DNA of 64,000 bases from Epiperipatus broadwayi (Eukaryota > Animalia > Onychophora): positions 13,640,001 through 13,704,000 of the forward strand of contig JAQFVV010000002.1 of the NCBI GenBank assembly GCA_028023455.1, written 5' to 3'. The translations under genes were made by a program, and so were the position numbers. A model generated the notes under the pieces. That model saw only the letters and a program-made list of their open reading frames with translations. It did not search any database and was not told the DNA's origin. Below are positions 7,135 through 47,002 of the stretch, one piece after another; within the stretch, counting starts at the first letter, position 1; each line of letters begins with the position of its first letter.

Positions 7135-7234
7135 ATTTTTTTTTCCCTCAGGTGTCATAGCATTGGCCGGGACGCGAACCCGCAACCCAAGCAAGTGCTT
7201 GTAAGGCAGTCGCTGACCTCTCGACCACCAATGC
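7135..7234 (-). mobile_element. tRNA-Gly-derived SINE copy (TAC loop)
   Basis: Body 7160-7234: GCATTGG/CCAATGC acceptor, GTCG/CGAC D-stem, loop CTTACAA, T-loop TTCGCGT; tail TATGACACCTGAGGGA8. Confidence 0.75.
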
Positions 7235-27789: not shown

Positions 27790-29288
27790 AGCAGAGGAAA
27801 AACTCTCCATACTGTAGCAACACTCAGTGCAAGTCAGAGTAATCAATGAATGCATGAATGTTTATGCACAAAATCCTTATCTAGTACCTATTCGTTGGTA
27901 TCACCAGACTAGTTTCTAGCTTGTGGCTTCCATCAGTGAAGAGCTTTGGATATGAGAGTACTGCACCTAGGTCTTAGGATCTAATACAACCCTCCTTCAG
28001 GCACCTTTTACTTTTTAGCTAACCATAAAGCTTTGAGGACAAAATAAAAATACAATAATGTTCTCAAGCTACTATTAGCTTGTTTGTTATATATATCTTA
28101 ACTCAATTCAGTATCCATACTTTTTGATGTCTTTGGTTCTTTAATAACCAGTCACCATAATACTATTGACAAGGATTGGTATTAAACCACCAAACATCAC
28201 ATGATCATCATTTTTTATGCTTACAAGCTGTTTTTAGAAGCAAAACTCTCCAGTGCAAACCAAGTAATCAATAGATGCAGGGGGTCTCTGTAAAAATATC
28301 TATCTAATGCCTATTCATCCAATATCCCTAACCTAGTTGCTAGCTTGTAGCTTTCATCAGTGAGGAGCTTTGGATTTGAGAGCACTACATTTAGATGTTA
28401 ATCACTGATGAAAGCCACAAGCTAGAACGTAGTCAGGAGATATTGGATGAGTAGGCACTAGACATGGATTTTATGCAAAAACCCTCCTGCATACATTGAT
28501 TACTCTGGCTTACACTGAGTGATATTACTGTATGGAGAGTTTTATCTCTGTGAAAACAGCTTGTGTAAGCATAAAGAAAGGTAATAATGTGATGTCTGAT
28601 GGTTTAATACCAATCCTTCCCAATAAGATTATGGTGACTGTGGTTATTGAAGAACAAAGATACAAAAAAGTGTGGATGCTGAACTGAGTTCAGATCTATA
28701 CAACTATACAAGCTACTGATCATAGCTTGAAAACATTACTGTGTTTTTATTATAGACTCAAAGCTTTATAGTTAGCTAAAAGAGTAAAAGGTGGCTGCTG
28801 GGGGATTGCATTAGATCTTAAGATCTTGATGCAGTGCTCTCAGATCCAAGACTCCTCTCACTGCCTAAAGCCGCAATCTAGAAACTAGTCTGGGGATATT
28901 GGATAAGTAGACACTAGATATAGATTTTATGAACTAATCTTCCTCCATCCATTGAATTGCTACGGCTTGCGCTGAGTGACACCACTGTATGAAGAGTTTT
29001 AACTCTGTGAAAACAGCTTGTGCAAGCATAAAGAATGATGATCATGTGATATTTGATGGATAAATACCAATTCTTACAAACAGATTATAATGACTGTGGT
29101 TATTAAAGAACCAAAGATATCAAAAATGTATAGATGCTGAACTGAGATTAGATCTATACAACTATACAAGCTACTAAGCATAGCTTGAAAACATTATTGT
29201 GGGTTTTTATTTTGGATTCAAAGCTTTATCATTAGCTAAAAGAGTAAAAACGTAACTGCTGGAGAGTTGCATTAGATCCTAAGATCAT
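27790..29288. mobile_element. Older HHR family A array, head-to-head (minus arm ~27790-28397, plus arm 28402-29288)
   Basis: Homologous to the 466-bp unit; HHR cores at 27907-27936(-), 28331-28360(-), 28405-28434(+) and 28861-28890(+), each with at least one core mutation; plus-arm period 456. Confidence 0.9.
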
Positions 29289-29289
29289 A

Positions 29290-30700
29290 TTTGACTGAGT
29301 TTGAATGCTGAGGATTTATAATGAATCAAGAGGAAATGTGTAACATATAAACAATAATGGGTAGTTGGATTGTTATACAGGTTCAATTATAGTTGTGTTT
29401 CCAAGATTAGTTCATGGAATATAAATTATAGTATCATCATTATATTCCTGGTAGATCTTTTTACTTATAGAATTTCAATATATGATTAGGTGTATGGTTT
29501 ATTAAACATCATCTGATCCCACATCTTTGCCATTACAAAGCAGCACCTCAATATAACAGATTGATAAATTACCTGGTTTTATTTATATTTCTCTAATCAC
29601 TGAAGAAATGATTATATAATCTAATACCTTTTCATAATCTACAAATCCAAAAACATAATGACAACTTATATTCATTGTTGCCTTCTATTACTTCTCTCAA
29701 TATTTGGATATGATCCACTGTACTAAAACCACTTTCAAATCCATCTTGTTCTTTTGATTGGTTAAAATCCAAAGTTTGCTTTAGATGAGTTGAAATTATC
29801 TTGATTTTTGTAAAGAACTGATAGAAGATTGATAGGTTTGTAATTTTTAACACCTTTATTACCTTTTTAAAATATTATTATTTATACTGCATTCTTCCAA
29901 TCATCTAGTACTCTTTATCATTTAGCCATTTGGTATATAACTTTGACAATATTTTTTCTATTTCTTCATCTGTTTCTTTTAAGATATTGATTATAATTCC
30001 ATATTTAAGTGAAGCTTATCCATTCTTCATAGATTTAATTGCATTTCTCACTTAAAATCCTGAGGAATTTAGAAGATATAGTGATGAAGGCCACAAGCCA
30101 GAAACTAGTCTAGGGATATTGGATGAGTAGGAACTAGATAGGGATGTTATGCACAAGCCTTCTGGTACACATTGATTACTCTAGATTGCACTGAGTGGCA
30201 CTACTGTTTGGAGAGAGTTTTTCCTGTTTTAAGATATAGTAGTTATAGGAAATACTTTTCCTTGTTCTTTATTGCTAAATAAGTCTTGATAAACTCTTCT
30301 ACACATTTCATTATATTATCTCTCCTTTTATTAATAGTTTCATCTCTTTTTCTTCTAAAGCTTTACTTACACAATTACCCTTTCTATATTCTTATCACTC
30401 TTTTTTGGACTATTTTATAAAATTTATAGATATTCAATCCTTCTTAATACATCATTTTTATATATTTTTGTATTTTTTCTTTTCTTCATAAATTGCATTG
30501 TCTTGGTAAAAAAAATTTACTGGTCAATTGCTGCTTTCTTGTTTTTAAAAGTGTTTCACTTATGATCCTATTGATTTTGTTGAAATCTGAATCATGTTCA
30601 AAATCTATTAATATTTGAATATGGTTTGCAGCTTGTAATTTAAATTCATTGGAATGTTTCTAAAGATTAGGAATATCAACTGTGAACATGTGTATTTATA
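29290..30700 (-). mobile_element. RTE-clade LINE RT remnant
   Basis: NAIKSMKNG...DDWKNAV...KGNK.VKNYKPINLLSVLYK...DFNQSKEQDGFESGFSTVDHIQILREVIE...FVDYEK. Confidence 0.85.
30083..30230 (+). mobile_element. 148-bp HHR family A fragment inserted in the RTE, 10-bp TSD
   Basis: aagatatagt at 30073-30082 and 30231-30240; contains (G)TGATGA-AGGCCACAAGCCA-GAAACTAGTC. Confidence 0.85.
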
Positions 30701-34030: not shown

Positions 34031-37000
34031 ATAAATCCTATTCCGCTTATTATTTTTTTTTTATTGTTATTCATTACATTTATAAATATAATATTATACA
34101 CTGCATGGTTTTATATTATTGCTTAAGAAAAGAAATAGCAAATTTTGTTTCTTGCAATGGTTTAATCTGTTGATATTGTTATGTTTATACATACTGCTTA
34201 AATGAGTAAAAGATTAAATGTAAACTACAGGTAATGAATATATATTAAATACTGACAGGAAATAAGTTATGACATTTTATTTCTGCTTTAAGCAAAAAAA
34301 AAAAAACAAAAAAACATGATAAAATACAATTAATGATAATTAAATGTATCCCTGATTTAATTATAACATTTTTCTATTTTGACTTGCTGTCAATATTTTT
34401 GGAATAAAATTCTAATTTCATTTTACTTTCAGATAAAAATTATTAAACAAATTCTCGACTAATAATCTACAATAATGCTATCCAAACTCTTTTCACCTTC
34501 ATATTCTTTAGTAGGCCATTTCTGTAAATTGTACTTAAATAGTAACAGTTATTCCAAATTAATGTTAAAATTGTAAATAACTAGTCAATAATGGGATTTA
34601 AATCCAATGGAATAATAAGATGAATTAGACAATACCTTTGTAAGGTACAATGAAAAATCAAGAAATTACATCACAAATTATATGTATAAAAAAACTATAT
34701 TACATTGAAGTAAATGTCTTTTCTTATCACTTGAATTTTAATATACATCTAAATATCCTGATTCATATCTCTAGACATACATAAATCCCAAGTTGGAAAT
34801 CACTGATATACAATGCAGATGATTATAATTTAATATATATTACAAATATATAATGAATGTTTTTCAATCAATAATTGATAAACCAGTTATTATGAAGAAA
34901 AGAAGAATATTAAACTTTTGGAAAAGAGTTTTAGAAAAATTTGTAAACCAGCCTTTAACAAATAAATAATGTATATTATTTATTGTGTGTGCATATAAAA
35001 TTTGTAAATCAATTGTAACTAATTTTTGCTTCCAATTTATTTTTTAAAAATACATTAATTCTTAACAACCAGCATCCAGCGGATATTATATTATTTATAC
35101 TCAATTACTTTAGCTGCTTTTTTTTCTTATATTTTATCAATTTACCATCAAATAATATTTCTACCACAGAATTCATTAAATGTTGGAAAAAAAAACAACC
35201 TCTCACACACATACAAACAAGCTTCATATTTTATTAGAGAAGTTAGTAAATAATCCAAAATAATGACAAATGGTAAGAATCTGATGTGTATGTTGGTAAA
35301 AACAACAACTTTTATTCTGAATATATATTAATAGCATGTTAGTTTTTCAACAAGTGACTTGCTTTCACACTTTATTTTACTTTGTTAACTTTATACAATG
35401 ATCTCTTCAGCATATTTCACCACTTACGAACTCCTGGGCTCGCAAGCACTTACTACTCACACTAATCACTGAATTGTTCTCTTACTATGTTCTTAACATC
35501 CTTCTGACATTTTAGATAGTCTAGTTTGTTTTGAGATATAATTTGCAAAAAAACAGTTCCATTATTATCTCCATGCAAATTAGCATATCCAGCTCATTTT
35601 AGTAGCTGCATAATTTAATCTACTATGCATTTTAATTATTTCTAAGAAGGTCTTTTATTGTCTTTTATTTTAACTAGTTTTCTTACACACATATGTAATT
35701 TTATTTACACTATTACACATTTTTAGCTAATGTTTAATAATATCTCCCCCTTCACTCTAGAAATAGGGTAGAATTTAATTGCAAATATAATCTTGAAATT
35801 TTCCAGGTCTTCTTTTGTAATCTAGCCCATCTTGGTGATGGTACAATCCTTTCTCTTCAATAGGTAGTTTACTATTTAATGTAGTAGATGGTTCCTTTAA
35901 ATCTAGACTAGAAATTTTAGATAATTGTAGACTAAAAGTTTTTTCCTCAACAAGGCATATCCATTTTAATATTCTTACTATTCCTTAGAGGATCTTCTAC
36001 ATGAGTGGCAGCTGAACTTATAATTATATCCATTATCTCTGGCATAATAAAATGTTCTATAAATGGTTAATGTGCTGTCTTACTTCTTTACCATTTTCCA
36101 TTTTAATATGCATATTTGCATAGACAGTAGCTTAATTATAATCCCAGGTATTCATTTTTTCCTCGATATGTCTCTAATCCAGACCATCTGTTCTATATTG
36201 AACTTGTCATTTTCAGACTTTATTTTCTTCCTTTTAGTTTTGTCTGAAATAAACACAGAAATATGTATTCTGTTATGGTGCTTAATTAATAATTCTGGAG
36301 GGTTTTTTGGTAATTGAACTTAGTGTAAAATGCTGATAAAACATTGTTGTTGTTAGCACTTCATGAATATTAACATACTCCATTCTATTCAGTGTGCATT
36401 TTAGATGTTAAATGGTCTTTTATACTAATCCATTTGAATTAGAATGGGATGAAGGTGATAGCATGTCATATCCCCTTTCTCAATGAGAAAATCTTTTAAT
36501 TGCACTGAATAAAATCCTGCACCAATGTTCTTAACTATAAGCTCAAAATACCTGGGTGTTGCAAAAACTTGTTTAATACTTTTATTACATTATCTGCATT
36601 TGTATTTTTTTTTTTTTTTTTTGCATTCTGTATTTCATCCATTTGTAATATGATTTACAAAGAATATGTATTGATGAAAAGGCCTTGCGTGATCTAAACG
36701 GATCCTTTCCCATAGCCATTTTGCTTCAAGCCAAAACTTGAACTCTTTCATAGATAATCTCAATTGTTTCTTGACAGGTTTGGCATTTCTTTACCATTAT
36801 TTCAATGTCATTATTCATGTCAGCTACCAGACATACAAACAGGCTTGTACCTTCATGCATACTCTCACAAAATATCCTTTGTGTAGCTATTATAGCACTT
36901 GTTTCCTTCTCTAAGAACTGAAACTTGGACCATCATAAAAATGCATTCTTAACACACAAACTTTCTTAAACATTCCATATTTGTGACATTACATAGTTTG

Positions 37001-37259
37001 GATGTGCTTTTGGCCCTCTTTATTTAATCCAATCATTAACTAAATGGTATACCACATCATTTGTAATCCATTCTATTACAACTTTGTTATTTAGGGTTTT
37101 TAGGCTCCACTCAAACAGCAAATGGAGATTGGACTTTAAATTTCCATTAGGATCTTTTTATATGTTCAATATTCATTCCCAGAGGTCGGAATCAGTTACA
37201 TCCCAGTATAGGGTTAAGATGTTCAAGTTATAAACATGAAATGAAAAAAGGTAAAATCA

Positions 37260-37383
37260 TATTAAATACATTATTCGCTAAGCATGCCTTGAACTAGTCC
37301 ACCAGATTCATAGCACTAAACTATTCTGCAGTTTGTAAAACAAGTTTAGTCGAAAGCATGCTCAATGAATAATATACTTAATA
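37260..37383. repeat. MITE-like foldback, ~25-bp imperfect TIRs
   Basis: 37263-37287 vs reverse complement of 37356-37380: 20/25 identical, all mismatches transitions; nested ACTAAACT/AGTTTAGT stem. Confidence 0.55.
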
Positions 37384-37582
37384 CGATTATATCTTCTCTT
37401 AAACCACTAAACATCACATGATCACTATCTCATACTAGCACAATAATTGTTATTAAACAATCCAAAACAAAGCAAAACTCTCCATATAGTAGTGCCATCT
37501 TGTGCTAACAAGAGCAATCAATGGATGCCAGAAGGCTTGTGCATAAAATCCCTATCTAGTGCCTACTCATCCAATATCCCCA

Positions 37583-37612
37583 GACTAGTTTCTGGCTTGC
37601 GGCCTTCATCAG
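37583..37612 (-). ncRNA. Type I hammerhead ribozyme core (family A)
   Basis: CTGATGA-A-GGC(CGCAA)GCC-A-GAAA-CTAG-TC. Confidence 0.9.
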
Positions 37613-38048
37613 TGAGGAGCCCTGGATCTGAGAGCACTGCACCTAGATCTTAGGATCTAATGCAACCCTCCAGCACCCACCTTTTAACTCTATTTAACTA
37701 CAAAACTATGAGAATGAAATTGAAAACACTATTAATATTTTCAATCCAAGCTCAATAGCTTATATAGTCATATGGGTCTGAACTCAATTCAGCACCCATA
37801 CATTTTGGTGTCTTTGGCTCTTTAACAACCATAGCCACCACTATCCTATTAGGCAGGATTGGTGTTAAACCACTAAACATCACATGATCACTATCTCATA
37901 CTAGCACAATAATTGTTATTAAACAATCCAAAACAAAGCAAAACTCTCCATATAGTAGTGCCATCTTGTGCTAACAAGAGCAATCAATGGATGCCAGAAG
38001 GCTTGTGCATAAAATCCCTATCTAGTGCCTACTCATCCAATATCCCCA

Positions 38049-38078
38049 GACTAGTTTCTGGCTTGCGGCCTTCATCAG
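38049..38078 (-). ncRNA. Type I hammerhead ribozyme core (family A)
   Basis: Identical to 37583-37612. Confidence 0.9.
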
Positions 38079-38514
38079 TGAGGAGCCCTGGATCTGAGAG
38101 CACTGCACCTAGATCTTAGGATCTAATGCAACCCTCCAGCACCCACCTTTTAACTCTATTTAACTACAAAACTATGAGAATGAAATTGAAAACACTATTA
38201 ATATTTTCAATCCAAGCTCAATAGCTTATATAGTCATATGGGTCTGAACTCAATTCAGCACCCATACATTTTGGTGTCTTTGGCTCTTTAACAACCATAG
38301 CCACCACTATCCTATTAGGCAGGATTGGTGTTAAACCACTAAACATCACATGATCACTATCTCATACTAGCACAATAATTGTTATTAAACAATCCAAAAC
38401 AAAGCAAAACTCTCCATATAGTAGTGCCATCTTGTGCTAACAAGAGCAATCAATGGATGCCAGAAGGCTTGTGCATAAAATCCCTATCTAGTGCCTACTC
38501 ATCCAATATCCCCA

Positions 38515-38544
38515 GACTAGTTTCTGGCTTGTGGCCTTCATCAG
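38515..38544 (-). ncRNA. Type I hammerhead ribozyme core (family A)
   Basis: Same core, loop II CACAA. Confidence 0.9.
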
Positions 38545-38980
38545 TGAGGAGCCCTGGATCTGAGAGCACTGCACCTAGATCTTAGGATCTAATGCAACCC
38601 TCCAGCACCCACCTTTTAACTCTATTTAACTACAAAACTATGAGAATGAAATTGAAAACACTATTAATATTTTCAATCCAAGCTCAATAGCTTATATAGT
38701 CATATGGGTCTGAACTCAATTCAGCACCCATACATTTTGGTGTCTTTGGCTCTTTAACAACCATAGCCACCACTATCCTATTAGGCAGGATTGGTGTTAA
38801 ACCACTAAACATCACATGATCACTATCTCATACTAGCACAATAATTGTTATTAAACAATCCAAAACAAAGCAAAACTCTCCATATAGTAGTGCCATCTTG
38901 TGCTAACAAGAGCAATCAATGGATGCCAGAAGGCTTGTGCATAAAATCCCTATCTAGTGCCTACTCATCCAATATCCCCA

Positions 38981-39010
38981 GACTAGTTTCTGGCTTGCGG
39001 CCTTCATCAG
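38981..39010 (-). ncRNA. Type I hammerhead ribozyme core (family A)
   Basis: Identical to 37583-37612. Confidence 0.9.
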
Positions 39011-39283
39011 TGAGGAGCCCTGGATCTGAGAGCACTGCACCTAGATCTTAGGATCTAATGCAATCCTGCCTAATAGGATAGTGGTGGCTATGGTTGTTAA
39101 AGAGCCAAAGACACCAAAATGTATGGGTGCTGAATTGAGTTCAGACCCATATGACTATATAAGCTATTGAGCTTGGATTGAAAATATTAATAGTGTTTTC
39201 AATTTCATTCTCATAGTTTTGTAGTTAAATAGAGTTAAAAGGTGGGTGCTGGAGGGTTGCATTAGATCCTAAGATCTAGGTGC

Positions 39284-39364
39284 AGTGCTCTCAGATCCAG
39301 GGCTCCTCACTGATGAAGGCCGCAAGCCAGAAACTAGTCTGGGGATATTGGATGAGTAGGCACT
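39284..39364 (+). ncRNA. Type I hammerhead ribozyme (family A) with extended helix I; predicted cleavage after GUC at 39339
   Basis: Helix I: TCCTCA/TGGGGA, ATCCAG/TTGGAT, CTC/GAG, AGTGCT/GGCACT; core 39310-39339; helix III palindrome ACTAGT. Confidence 0.9.
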
Positions 39365-41171
39365 AGATAGGGATTTTATGCACAAGCCTTCTGGCATCCA
39401 TTGATTGCTCTTGTTAGCACAAGATGGCACTACTATATGGAGAGTTTTGCTTTGTTTTGGATTGTTTAATATATCTTCTCTTGTTCTATGTTTGTAATGG
39501 AATATAAATATTAGTTGTTTGTACAAATCTTAGACAAATGACTTGTCATTCCACAATTATGATACTTATATTTCCTGAATGTATATTCTTTTTATGTGTC
39601 CTTTCTTTCTCCAGCAATAACAGATATCAATCTCCTGTTTAGTATTTTTCTCCTTTCTCTATGCTTTAGTTTTGTTTATATATGTGGTTGGCTTAACTTC
39701 GTTTACCCCATTTTAAAATTCTAATGCATATTCTAGAAAAATTTCATATACTATTCATCATTCAATGGCAGCAGTATAATTTATTATAGATTCACTTAAC
39801 AATATTTGTCTACGTTTCTCTGCTCACATTGCATAATGATGGTCTAATAGCATCTCTTCTAAATAGCCTCCAAATTTGCATTCTTTCAATAATTCTCAGA
39901 GCACTATATCATACCCCTGTATATTTTCATTTGGTAATTGCATTTTGTTTTGGAAGTGAAGTCACGCTATAAATTTTGAAGGTGTTGGTTTGAAATATGA
40001 ATTTAACTTTTGCAGCAACTCCTTGTATGGAATATCTTAAGGCATTTTCAGTTCACAGAGATGATTTGTTAGTTGCAATACATCCTTCCCTGACTTCCAT
40101 ATTAGAGTAGCAACTTTCAACATATTAAAGATGTTATCTATTATCACGAATCTTTCAACTTGATTAACATATATGTATTTGCCATAGCCCAGAATTGTTA
40201 GGTTAAGTGGCATTATTGTACAATTCTGCATTGCCATTTCATATAAACATGTAGACAATTAATACTTTACACAGGTTTTTAAGACTGCAGCAAATGATGT
40301 GTACAGGTCTTGAATTGTCAAACTGCACCAACTGATGTGTACAGGTCTCAAATTGTGCCAAATGATATGCACAGAGGCCAGATTTCACCTAAGCCACTCA
40401 TTAAATTATTTTGGAAATAATACACACACAAAAAAATTTAACTTAATAAGTTTATTACTTTGAATATATAATATTAGTAGCATGCCGATCTTTCAACTAG
40501 CAACTTACTGATTGACTTCCATAAATTCAAGCAGACTTAATTATAGACACATAGTTCTTTATAGTATTGAAATATAACATCGCATTTCTTATACAATACT
40601 TTATTTTACATTGTTAATTTTACACCACAATGATCTCCTCAACATATTTCACTGCTCATAAACTGTTGGTTTCGCAAGCACTTTATGGCTCACATTATAC
40701 TCAGTATTGAACTGCTCCGGCTATGTGCTTAACGTTCTGCTGACATTTTTGACAGTCTGTTTTGTTTTGAGATATAATTTGCATAAAAGTTTCATTATTA
40801 TCTCCTTGCAAATTAACAAATTCAGGTCATTATGGAATTTGTATAACTTAACTTATTATGCATTTTATTTATTTCTAGTGATTTTTGTTGTGTTTTATTC
40901 TGACTACTTTTCATGCATAAACATGTAACTTAATTTTTAGTCAATACCCGGCAGTATCAATACACATCATATAAAAAATTTAAAAATCACAAGATATAAA
41001 ATAACAGTAATAGTCAATGTGCATATGGCAGTACTTCTACATGAACTTTTTCTAATTTTTTTTAAAGTTATGTATATCAAAATATTTTGTGTTTCTGTGA
41101 ACTGTTATGGAAATAAAATTTCCAAAAATTAATAACACTTTTTAAAGTTTAAATAGCTTTTTACTGTAGTA

Positions 41172-42068: not shown

Positions 42069-42504
42069 AATAATTAGGGGTGAAAAAATTATATGTTTGA
42101 TTAAGTATATAGCAGGTTAATATTTAAGTCGATAATTTTGTATAACTTGCGAATGTTATTACTTATGGCCATGGGCAGAAAAAAAATCCTCACTATCGCT
42201 CTAGTACATAAAAAAAATTCAACGTTAGGTGGCGTACAATGAATATTTCTTAAAACCTTCTTGCTTAAATATTTTCAAAATGAAAATTAATTAAATTACT
42301 TATATAGAATAATATTTACATGTAGTCTTTAAAATATCTCGGCTTTTATATAAAAATTTCAACCTGTACACTGATTTTTATTTTTCAATATATCTTTAAA
42401 TTTTCATAAAATAATTCAAATAATAAATAAAATTAAAACTTGCCTACTGGCTCCAGCAGAGTGACTGAATTTAACGATTAAATAGAAGGCGTTTGATAGA
42501 GCGA

Positions 42505-42577
42505 GCCTCTTTAGCTCAGTGGTTAGAGCACTGGTCTTGTAAACCAGGGGTCGAGAGTTCGAATCTCTCAAGGGGCT
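42505..42577 (+). tRNA. trnT-TGT: tRNA-Thr(TGT), intact
   Basis: Acceptor GCCTCTT/AAGGGGC, D-stem GCTC/GAGC, anticodon stem CTGGT/ACCAG with loop CTTGTAA, T-stem GAGAG/CTCTC with TTCGAAT. Confidence 0.97.
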
Positions 42578-42582
42578 GGGAA

Positions 42583-45578: not shown

Positions 45579-46010
45579 AAACATCACATGATCACCATTT
45601 CTTATGCATAAACAAGCAATTAAAAAATAGCAACTCTCTTCATATAATAATGCTACATAGTGAAAGCCATTATAGCCAATGGATGCTAGAAGGTTTCTGC
45701 ATCAAAATCCCCTATCTAGTGCCTACTTATCCAATATCCTCACAATAATTTCTAGTTTATGGCTTTCATTGGTGAGGAGCCTTGAATATGAGAATATTGC
45801 ATCTAGCAGTCATTTTTTTACCTTTTTAGTTTCCTTCTAGCATCCATTAATTATTATGGCTTATATTGATGGCTCTACTATATGGAGAGAATTGCTAGTC
45901 TATAGAAACATATGGTTGATTTCATAATATGACTTTTATACTTTTCACATGATCATCCATTGATTACTCTAGCTTGCTGTGTGTGGCAATACGTAGGGTA
46001 AGTTTTGCCT
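45579..46010. mobile_element. Decayed HHR family A remnants (minus copy 45579-45808, plus fragments ~45868-46010)
   Basis: aaacatcacatgatca...cctatctagtgcctact..ccaatatcc...gtgaggagcc; core 45743-45772 destroyed. Confidence 0.75.
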
Positions 46011-46899: not shown

Positions 46900-47002
46900 G
46901 CATTGGTGGTTGAGAGGTCAGCGACAGCTGCTTTACAAGCAGTTGTCCCGGAATAGCGGGTTCGCTTCCCGGCTGATGCTATGACCCATGAGAAAAAAAA
47001 AA
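46900..47002 (+). mobile_element. tRNA-Gly-derived SINE copy (TAC loop)
   Basis: Body 46900-46979, anticodon stem GCTGC/GCAGT with loop TTTACAA, T-loop TTCGCTT; tail TATGACCCATGAGA10; aaaaatat on both sides. Confidence 0.75.

Follow-up and report, generated by a model that had tools for sequence, protein, structure and literature searches.

A very recent hammerhead-repeat insertion with a Penelope-type footprint in the genome of Epiperipatus broadwayi

A stretch of 64,000 nucleotides from the onychophoran Epiperipatus broadwayi (assembly GCA_028023455.1, contig JAQFVV010000002.1, positions 13,640,001 to 13,704,000, forward strand), here called the window and used for all coordinates below, carries a non-coding insertion of about 2.1 kb at 37401–39469. 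It is built from copies of a 466-nt unit with a hammerhead-like motif and is bracketed by an exact 13-nt direct repeat, TATATCTTCTCTT, at 37388–37400 and 39470–39482, the two copies of its target-site duplication (TSD). The insertion is very young and arose in one event inside one TSD. It is probably one very recent insertion of a non-coding, non-autonomous hammerhead repeat, most likely made by the reverse transcriptase (RT) and GIY-YIG endonuclease (EN) of a Penelope-like element (PLE).

Anatomy of the insertion

The tandem array was delimited by TRF at 37399–39067 (period 466, 3.6 copies, 99% matches, score 3324), and the repeat search assigned to its head-to-tail portion (37401–39067) 3.57 units of 466 bp in four in-register direct copies. 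Unit positions are numbered q1–q466, counted from 37401. Arm A (37401–39064, - strand) begins at q1, in the terminus zone called A below, and comprises three full units (37401–37866, 37867–38332, and 38333–38798) followed by q1–266. Its ribozyme-sense strand is the - strand, the 3' end of which adjoins the left TSD copy; the closing TT of that copy is also q465–466, i.e., a 2-nt primer/template microhomology. The inverted arm was detected at 39061–39471 (411 nt, 0.88 unit) and is 100% complementary to every tandem unit. As delimited here, arm B (39065–39469, + strand) runs from q461 down to q53, or to q51 if the TA in common with the TSD is counted. The ribozyme-sense strand of arm B is the + strand, and its 3' end, a terminus in zone B, adjoins the right TSD copy. 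At the inner arm junction (39061–39067) q266–269 of arm A joins q461 of arm B, with GCAA exactly common within a 7-nt overlap that has one mismatch. This junction is a microhomology join, not a palindrome.

The first-pass annotation of this DNA had described 3.57 tandem units and an inverted 0.88 unit within one TSD, a description that both programs confirm. Its statement that the insertion has no coding capacity also holds, the longest open reading frame (ORF) being one of 85 aa with a TTG start and all ORFs having a TTG or GTG start. Terminal direct repeats are absent from the element apart from the units themselves, as judged by a repeat search, and neither end has a poly(A) or A-rich tail. 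The GC content is 39.5%, against about 28% in the background.

A single real substitution was found among 2,071 bp by comparison with a 20-locus family consensus: C>T at a CpG at 38532 (q200, + strand), the position already singled out as the only difference between units. A second apparent mismatch, at 39065, lies inside the imperfect arm overlap and is not a mutation. The window unit matches the consensus at 465/466 positions; T is the majority base of the family at q200, and the C of the window, in a CG dinucleotide, is the rarer state. The q200 sites of the window (37600, 38066, 38532, 38998, and 39322) fall as CG in loop 2 of the hammerhead, most family copies having CA, and at the locus L033 C and T alternate between units. 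Position q200 is a hypermutable CpG, and its CG state probably marks the source lineage.

Layout of the family and the target site

The unit yields 2,221 first-look candidates in the 5.6-Gb assembly. The family census comprised 22 loci mapped with the unit (the window and 21 others), plus coordinates from the genome search; 21 insertions were resolved, namely the window, L030–L047, L049, and L050. Arm order is the same in all 21 resolved young insertions, with the left arm in unit orientation (+) and the right arm reversed (-), and the opposite order never occurs. Relative to the ribozyme, the left arm is in antisense and the right arm in sense orientation, and the ribozyme-sense 3' ends point outward (21/21). 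Older copies, both in the window (27799–29286 and 45579–45896) and at the other loci, are also + then -.

TSDs were found at 20 of the 21 other loci, most of them 11–16 bp with a mode of 13, for example TATATATAATATT, GTATAATCTATTA, AACACTTACCATA, and AAAACAACAAGTT; the TSD of L030 is at least 9 bp and is clipped by the contig start. No TTTT/AA-like consensus is present in the TSDs of the resolved loci. The first-pass annotation had made its view of a single retrotransposition event depend on other copies having TSDs. A dispersed young family with TSDs is what the genome holds and, together with the one TSD that encloses everything in the window, it upholds that view.

All 42 resolved outer ends fall within q1–72. 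In each of the 21 insertions one end lies in zone A (q1–11, mostly q1) and the other in zone B (q45–72, mostly q50–54), never both in A or both in B, a rule with a probability of about 5e-7 under independent end choice. Seven further loci, represented by coordinates from the genome search only, fit the same rule. The window insertion ends at q1 and q51–53, which are canonical for the whole family, and for the outer ends the earlier statement that the arms begin and end at arbitrary positions of the unit is not supported. The first-pass annotation had also counted a fixed start against its own reading; with fixed zones found, retrotransposition stands, and random priming is replaced by site-specific initiation. 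On the RNA both zones contain GUUUAA, and both start sites lie in predicted small hairpin loops (GUG-GUUUAA-CAC and AUUGUU-UAAU-AACAAU). The target primer at zone A usually ends in TT, complementing the AA of the loop.

Inner junctions are variable, with 0–7 nt of microhomology and occasional longer overlaps and filler, and are near-symmetric (within 60 nt) in 12/19. The arrays comprise 1–6 units inside a single TSD and were therefore born multimeric. Variation within insertions consists of 355 singletons and 16 variants common to a subset of units. For example, three variants are distributed mosaic-like across the six units of L031, q438T and q179T are common to particular units of both arms in L040, one unit of L046 differs from three others at several sites, and q95T of L035 is confined to the three outer units of one arm. 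These shared variants, in part mirrored between arms, may go back to a template that was not uniform, to template switching, or to gene conversion from one arm to the other.

Several older or rearranged copies were also recorded. The window array at 27799–29286 is an older member of the family, 75–80% identical, with a unit of about 457 bp and two arms, + then -; its inner junction (28400/28402) falls exactly at the CUGAUGA box. It retains q1–30 (TTAAACCACCAAACATCACATGATCA) but has a different sequence instead of q31–73, so that the zone B module seems to belong to the young subfamily only. Short old foldbacks of the family occur in the window (30082–30215 and 45579–45896) and at L039:4882–5107, L040:6405–6706, and L050:264–555. 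Each of their arms spans about q72 to about q200, and they have the look of miniature inverted-repeat transposable elements, yet keep the + then - order. At L048:2960–3182, a tandem duplication of a 51-nt flank piece plus the initial ~105 nt of the element adjoins an insertion of the family, the right side of which is truncated at q107 and has no TSD there, which is a post-insertion rearrangement. In short contigs of four sequencing runs the family is extremely abundant, with a very high summed k-mer depth, and it is found in other organisms too.

Both flanks of the window insertion (36616–37220 and 39515–40270) are part of an older dispersed repeat, of which over 40 paralogues were found (67–78% identity). 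In no fewer than eight of these, the two flanks sit on a single contig in unchanged order, 340–390 nt apart and without the element, which is consistent with insertion into that repeat. A search of the assembly with both flanks gave no near-identical allelic empty site, only the paralogues of 67–78%. A 164-nt source-run contig (X1 record 7), placed at window 39446–39609, matches 39470–39609 only from its letter 25; the first 24 letters, which are off the element, may represent an empty-site allele or an alignment artefact. Farther away, ARAGORN reported three tRNA-like genes at 7159–7234 (-), 42504–42578 (+), and 46900–46980 (+), Val-TAC twice and Thr-TGT once. Only the Thr gene passes the Rfam tRNA threshold (73.6 bits), and the Val genes may be tRNA-derived repeats.

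The hammerhead-like motif and its RNA

The insertion has five hammerhead-like cores, four on the - strand and one on the + strand. The motif of the first unit lies at 37552–37640 (-), with predicted cleavage between 37583 and 37582, and the further motifs of arm A lie at 38018–38106, 38484–38572, and 38950–39038 (-), that at 38484–38572 having the CpG transition of 38532 in its loop 2. In arm B the motif is at 39282–39370 (+), with CUGAUGA at 39310–39316 and predicted cleavage between 39339 and 39340. In ribozyme sense the order is the 5' strand of helix I, CUGAUGA, A-GGC-CGCAA-GCC-A, GAA-AC-UA-GU-C, the cut, and UGGGGAU as the 3' strand of helix I. By hand inspection this is a type I core, in which CUGAUGA, GAA, the A15.1/U16.1 pair, and C17 are all present, the helices follow the order I/II/III, and helix I is open. 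Helix I consists of 6 bp, an internal loop, and then a long interrupted helix. The ACUAGU of helix III is palindromic, and a palindromic short helix III likewise occurs in the dimer-acting hammerheads of amphibians and PLEs (PMC7229834). The predicted cleavage site corresponds to q183|q182 of the unit, and every arm crosses it without indels. The motif was assigned by inspection, not by a curated model, and would make the RNA a putative self-cleaving ribozyme.

In 11 diverged copies, 88% of the cells are paired, against 30–38% with slid partners. The sole compensatory pair is in helix II, being G-C in three copies, A-U in eight, and unpaired in none. The circular ribozyme-sense monomer has a predicted folding energy of -159.9 kcal/mol, compared with -119.5 +/- 5.7 for dinucleotide shuffles (z = -7.1), and the fold of the antisense strand gives z = -3.5. 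In this modeling the ribozyme-sense RNA is strongly structured, and the whole RNA looks to be under selection on that strand. A full-text literature search for strings of the core sequence returned unrelated primer matches only.

Integration and relation to known elements

The outward 3' polarity at both TSDs is the expectation of target-primed reverse transcription (TPRT) from both ends of a 13-nt staggered break. In the proposed course, an EN would cut the two target strands about 13 nt apart so that 3' overhangs remain, and each target 3'-OH would prime cDNA synthesis on the ribozyme-sense RNA. One primer would start at site A (...TT on the AA of GGUUUAAC, q1) and the other at site B (UUUAAUAA, q51–54), about 50 nt upstream. 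Copying would continue across the hammerhead site, itself uncleaved or religated, until the two cDNAs were 0.9 and 3.6 units long; their 3' ends would be joined through a few-nt microhomology (GCAA) and then filled in. The product would be tandem units with a head-to-head inverted arm, a one-sided tail of ~50 nt, and a 13-bp TSD. The first-pass annotation had ascribed the inversion to second-end priming; the geometry fits priming by both 3'-OH ends, but this is no special event, being obligatory in the family.

Both start sites lie 131–182 nt inside the monomer that self-cleavage would release, and the arms cross the cut site; the template would therefore be an uncleaved multimer or a religated circle, with about even odds for the circle and the linear multimer. 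Cleaved monomers were rejected as templates, as inner junctions show no clustering at q182 and the cleavage site is free of indels where units meet. Pure snap-back (self-priming) synthesis of the second arm was also rejected: initiation is site-specific in like manner at both outer ends, and no palindrome is found at the window junction (q269/q461), even though near-symmetric junctions are enriched. As a more tentative suggestion, the RT-EN complex, perhaps dimeric, might hold the two GUUUAA loops, ~52 nt apart on one RNA, with one loop for each 3' end of the staggered break. If this were true, every insertion would necessarily result from TPRT at both ends and have one tail, and arrays would be multimeric from birth. 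The tail and the inverted pseudo-long terminal repeats (pLTRs) of PLEs would then be explained as well, and the 466-nt unit would offer a non-coding substrate for reconstitution.

PLEs are abundant in this genome. The Pfam GIY-YIG model gives 10,242 candidates, and PLE open frames of 871–901 aa without stops are present at several loci, so judged from sequence autonomous PLEs are potentially active. Among 150 scored GIY-YIG matches, all 20 neighboring opposite-strand pairs are (-,+) and none is (+,-), which is the polarity of the hammerhead family; strings of (-,+,+,+) and (-,-,+) also occur. One PLE locus, L054:934–3021 (G000:C6351), is a 2.1-kb, 98%-identical head-to-head foldback of a PLE 3' half including the GIY-YIG domain. 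Its TSD measures ~16 bp (TTGAGCAATTAA.TAAC, with one indel). Only the left arm bears a tail, of 42 nt, and at ~105 nt from the short end there is a minimal ...CGAAACGUU... box that resembles a hammerhead.

In the literature, the PLE footprint is described as partial tandems next to an inverted copy that is truncated at its 5' end, with a tail of 30–40 bp at one end (Craig et al., 2021; PMC8557442). Arms placed head to head, a 31-bp tail on one inverted pLTR, TSDs of 8–10 bp, and a junction with palindromes or microhomology were described as well (Arkhipova et al., 2013; PMC3846280). The hammerhead family shares with it the partial tandems, the head-to-head inverted 5'-truncated copy, the one-sided extension, the short TSDs, and the junction microhomology, and in both the hammerhead lies 100–180 nt from the 3' end in sense orientation. 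It differs in having no RT/EN gene and in its tail, which is ~50 nt and obligatory (21/21), whereas the PLE tail is 30–40 nt and optional. Non-autonomous PLE derivatives that give 'multicopy head-to-tail insertions' were already reported in Chlamydomonas (PMC8557442). Those elements, MRC1 and the non-autonomous Chlamys, resemble their autonomous partner at the 3' end, mostly have no canonical hammerhead, and belong to the green lineage, whereas the present family is from an animal.

Several observations weigh against PLE-mediated mobilization of a hammerhead RNA. Rfam 15 finds no hammerhead at the gathering score in the 64 kb, nor even at E<=10 in 37300–39550, so the five intact cores of the first-pass annotation stand by hand inspection and not by the curated model. 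Hammerhead position 10.1/11.1 is an A.A mismatch rather than G-C, and helix III, with A-U and C-G around UA only, is too short for closing alone. The overall covariation score of the diverged copies, which are dead DNA, equals that of shuffles. BLAST of the unit against eight PLE loci, in a genome with more than 10,000 PLE candidates of several families, gave no significant similarity, only chance-level short AT-rich matches. The TSD mode of 13 bp is longer than the 8–10 bp of rotifer PLEs (PMC3846280), and the unit count of 3.57 comes from the assembly alone, the array having no spanning read. An 11-mer (q51–61) that recurs in the PLE loci was rejected as homology, its orientation being wrong.

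In the strongest rival explanation, which the first-pass annotation favored and which we regard as possible though doubtful, random priming on a circular 466-nt RNA is followed by rolling-circle reverse transcription, and chance second-end priming produces the inversion. The five pieces of the window, identical save for the one CpG transition and nearly identical to the consensus, fit such a course, as do starts internal to the self-cleaved monomer, a cleavage site crossed without indels, and the predominance of singletons among within-insertion variants. The window would be explained just as well by a linear multimer transcribed from a young, homogeneous master array. Starts are, however, non-random, the two zones being used one each, and the inversion is obligatory rather than occasional. 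Repeated passage of the RT around one circle is possible but unproven, and the mosaic units of L031, L035, L040, and L046 are contrary to it, being impossible from one circle without later gene conversion.

Mobilization by an L1-like long interspersed element (LINE) with an APE endonuclease and classical twin priming appears very improbable. In L1 twin priming a single RNA is copied from the two target 3'-OH ends, with outward sense 3' ends, a microhomology join, and a TSD of 7–20 bp as the outcome, and in all three respects the family is alike; the TT ends of the site A primers also agree. L1 uses its poly(A) tail, inverts only a minority of its insertions, and has neither tandem multimers nor a fixed second start site. 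The window insertion, in contrast, ends on neither side in poly(A) or an A-rich tail, and the family has an obligatory inversion, tandem multimers, and a fixed second start site; its multimers and its one-sided tail are PLE traits, and its TSDs lack the TTTT/AA-like consensus.

Slightly less probable still is an assembly artefact, in which the unit number and/or the inversion would come from a misassembled high-copy repeat. No contig spans the array, the k-mer depth is very high, and PLE-type tandem and inverted structures are known for troubling assemblies (PMC8557442). Source-run contigs (X1 records 1 and 7) nevertheless cover each flank as far as the boundary, 20 other loci on different contigs show this architecture with matching TSDs, and the arms are not simply symmetric. 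Growth at the DNA level after insertion of a monomer, by unequal crossing-over, replication slippage, or foldback amplification, is the least probable of all: later local amplification by unequal crossover was proposed for retrozyme arrays in a 2026 preprint (10.64898/2026.07.22.740005) and L048 has a post-insertion duplication, but here the whole structure, partial end units and inverted arm included, lies inside one TSD with identical units, 20 independent loci that differ in unit number share the layout of two arms bounded by a TSD, and unequal crossover is unable to make an inverted arm or paired A/B termini.

Dependence on PLEs, as in the preferred explanation, has been proposed for animal retrozymes before, on other grounds (Cervera and de la Pena, 2020, PMC7229834; Li, Clavereau and Pollet, 2026, preprint 10.64898/2026.07.22.740005). 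Like the animal retrozymes without long terminal repeats (LTRs), the family consists of tandem, low-GC, non-coding repeats with a type I hammerhead in each unit and a short palindromic helix III (ACUAGU), is dispersed, has TSDs of more than 4 bp, and has no LTR, primer-binding site (PBS), or polypurine tract (PPT); a PLE partner is proposed for both. The 466-nt unit is above the reported 170–400 nt (150–450 bp), and the A.A at 10.1/11.1 and the failure of Rfam set the hammerhead apart. Inverted arms, fixed termini, and multimers born within one TSD are described neither in PMC7229834 nor in the 2026 preprint. Plant LTR retrozymes (PMC4918200) are likewise non-autonomous retroelements, and their hammerheads excise an RNA that circularizes; they differ in having type III hammerheads in LTRs, a PBS, a PPT, 4-bp TSDs, and a Gypsy partner, none of which is found here.

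The insertion is a clean further case of a hammerhead retrozyme family bearing a Penelope-type footprint, and no new class of element is implied. Three features go beyond what was found in the cited papers: each insertion necessarily uses two different GUUUAA start sites, one at either end; TSD lengths have their mode at 13 bp; and the hammerhead carries the A.A mismatch and is missed by Rfam. The link between animal retrozymes and PLEs was so far suspected mainly from co-occurrence and pLTR similarity, and how PLEs integrate and come to leave tandem and inverted copies together with a tail on one side is not yet settled in published work (PMC8557442; PMC3846280; 10.64898/2026.07.22.740005). 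A young and abundant family provides the footprint at base-pair resolution, with 13-bp TSDs, multimer-born arrays, two fixed initiation sites, and microhomology joins. This footprint ties the retrozyme to PLE-type integration by mechanism, not by phylogeny, and the unit offers a small non-coding substrate for experiments.

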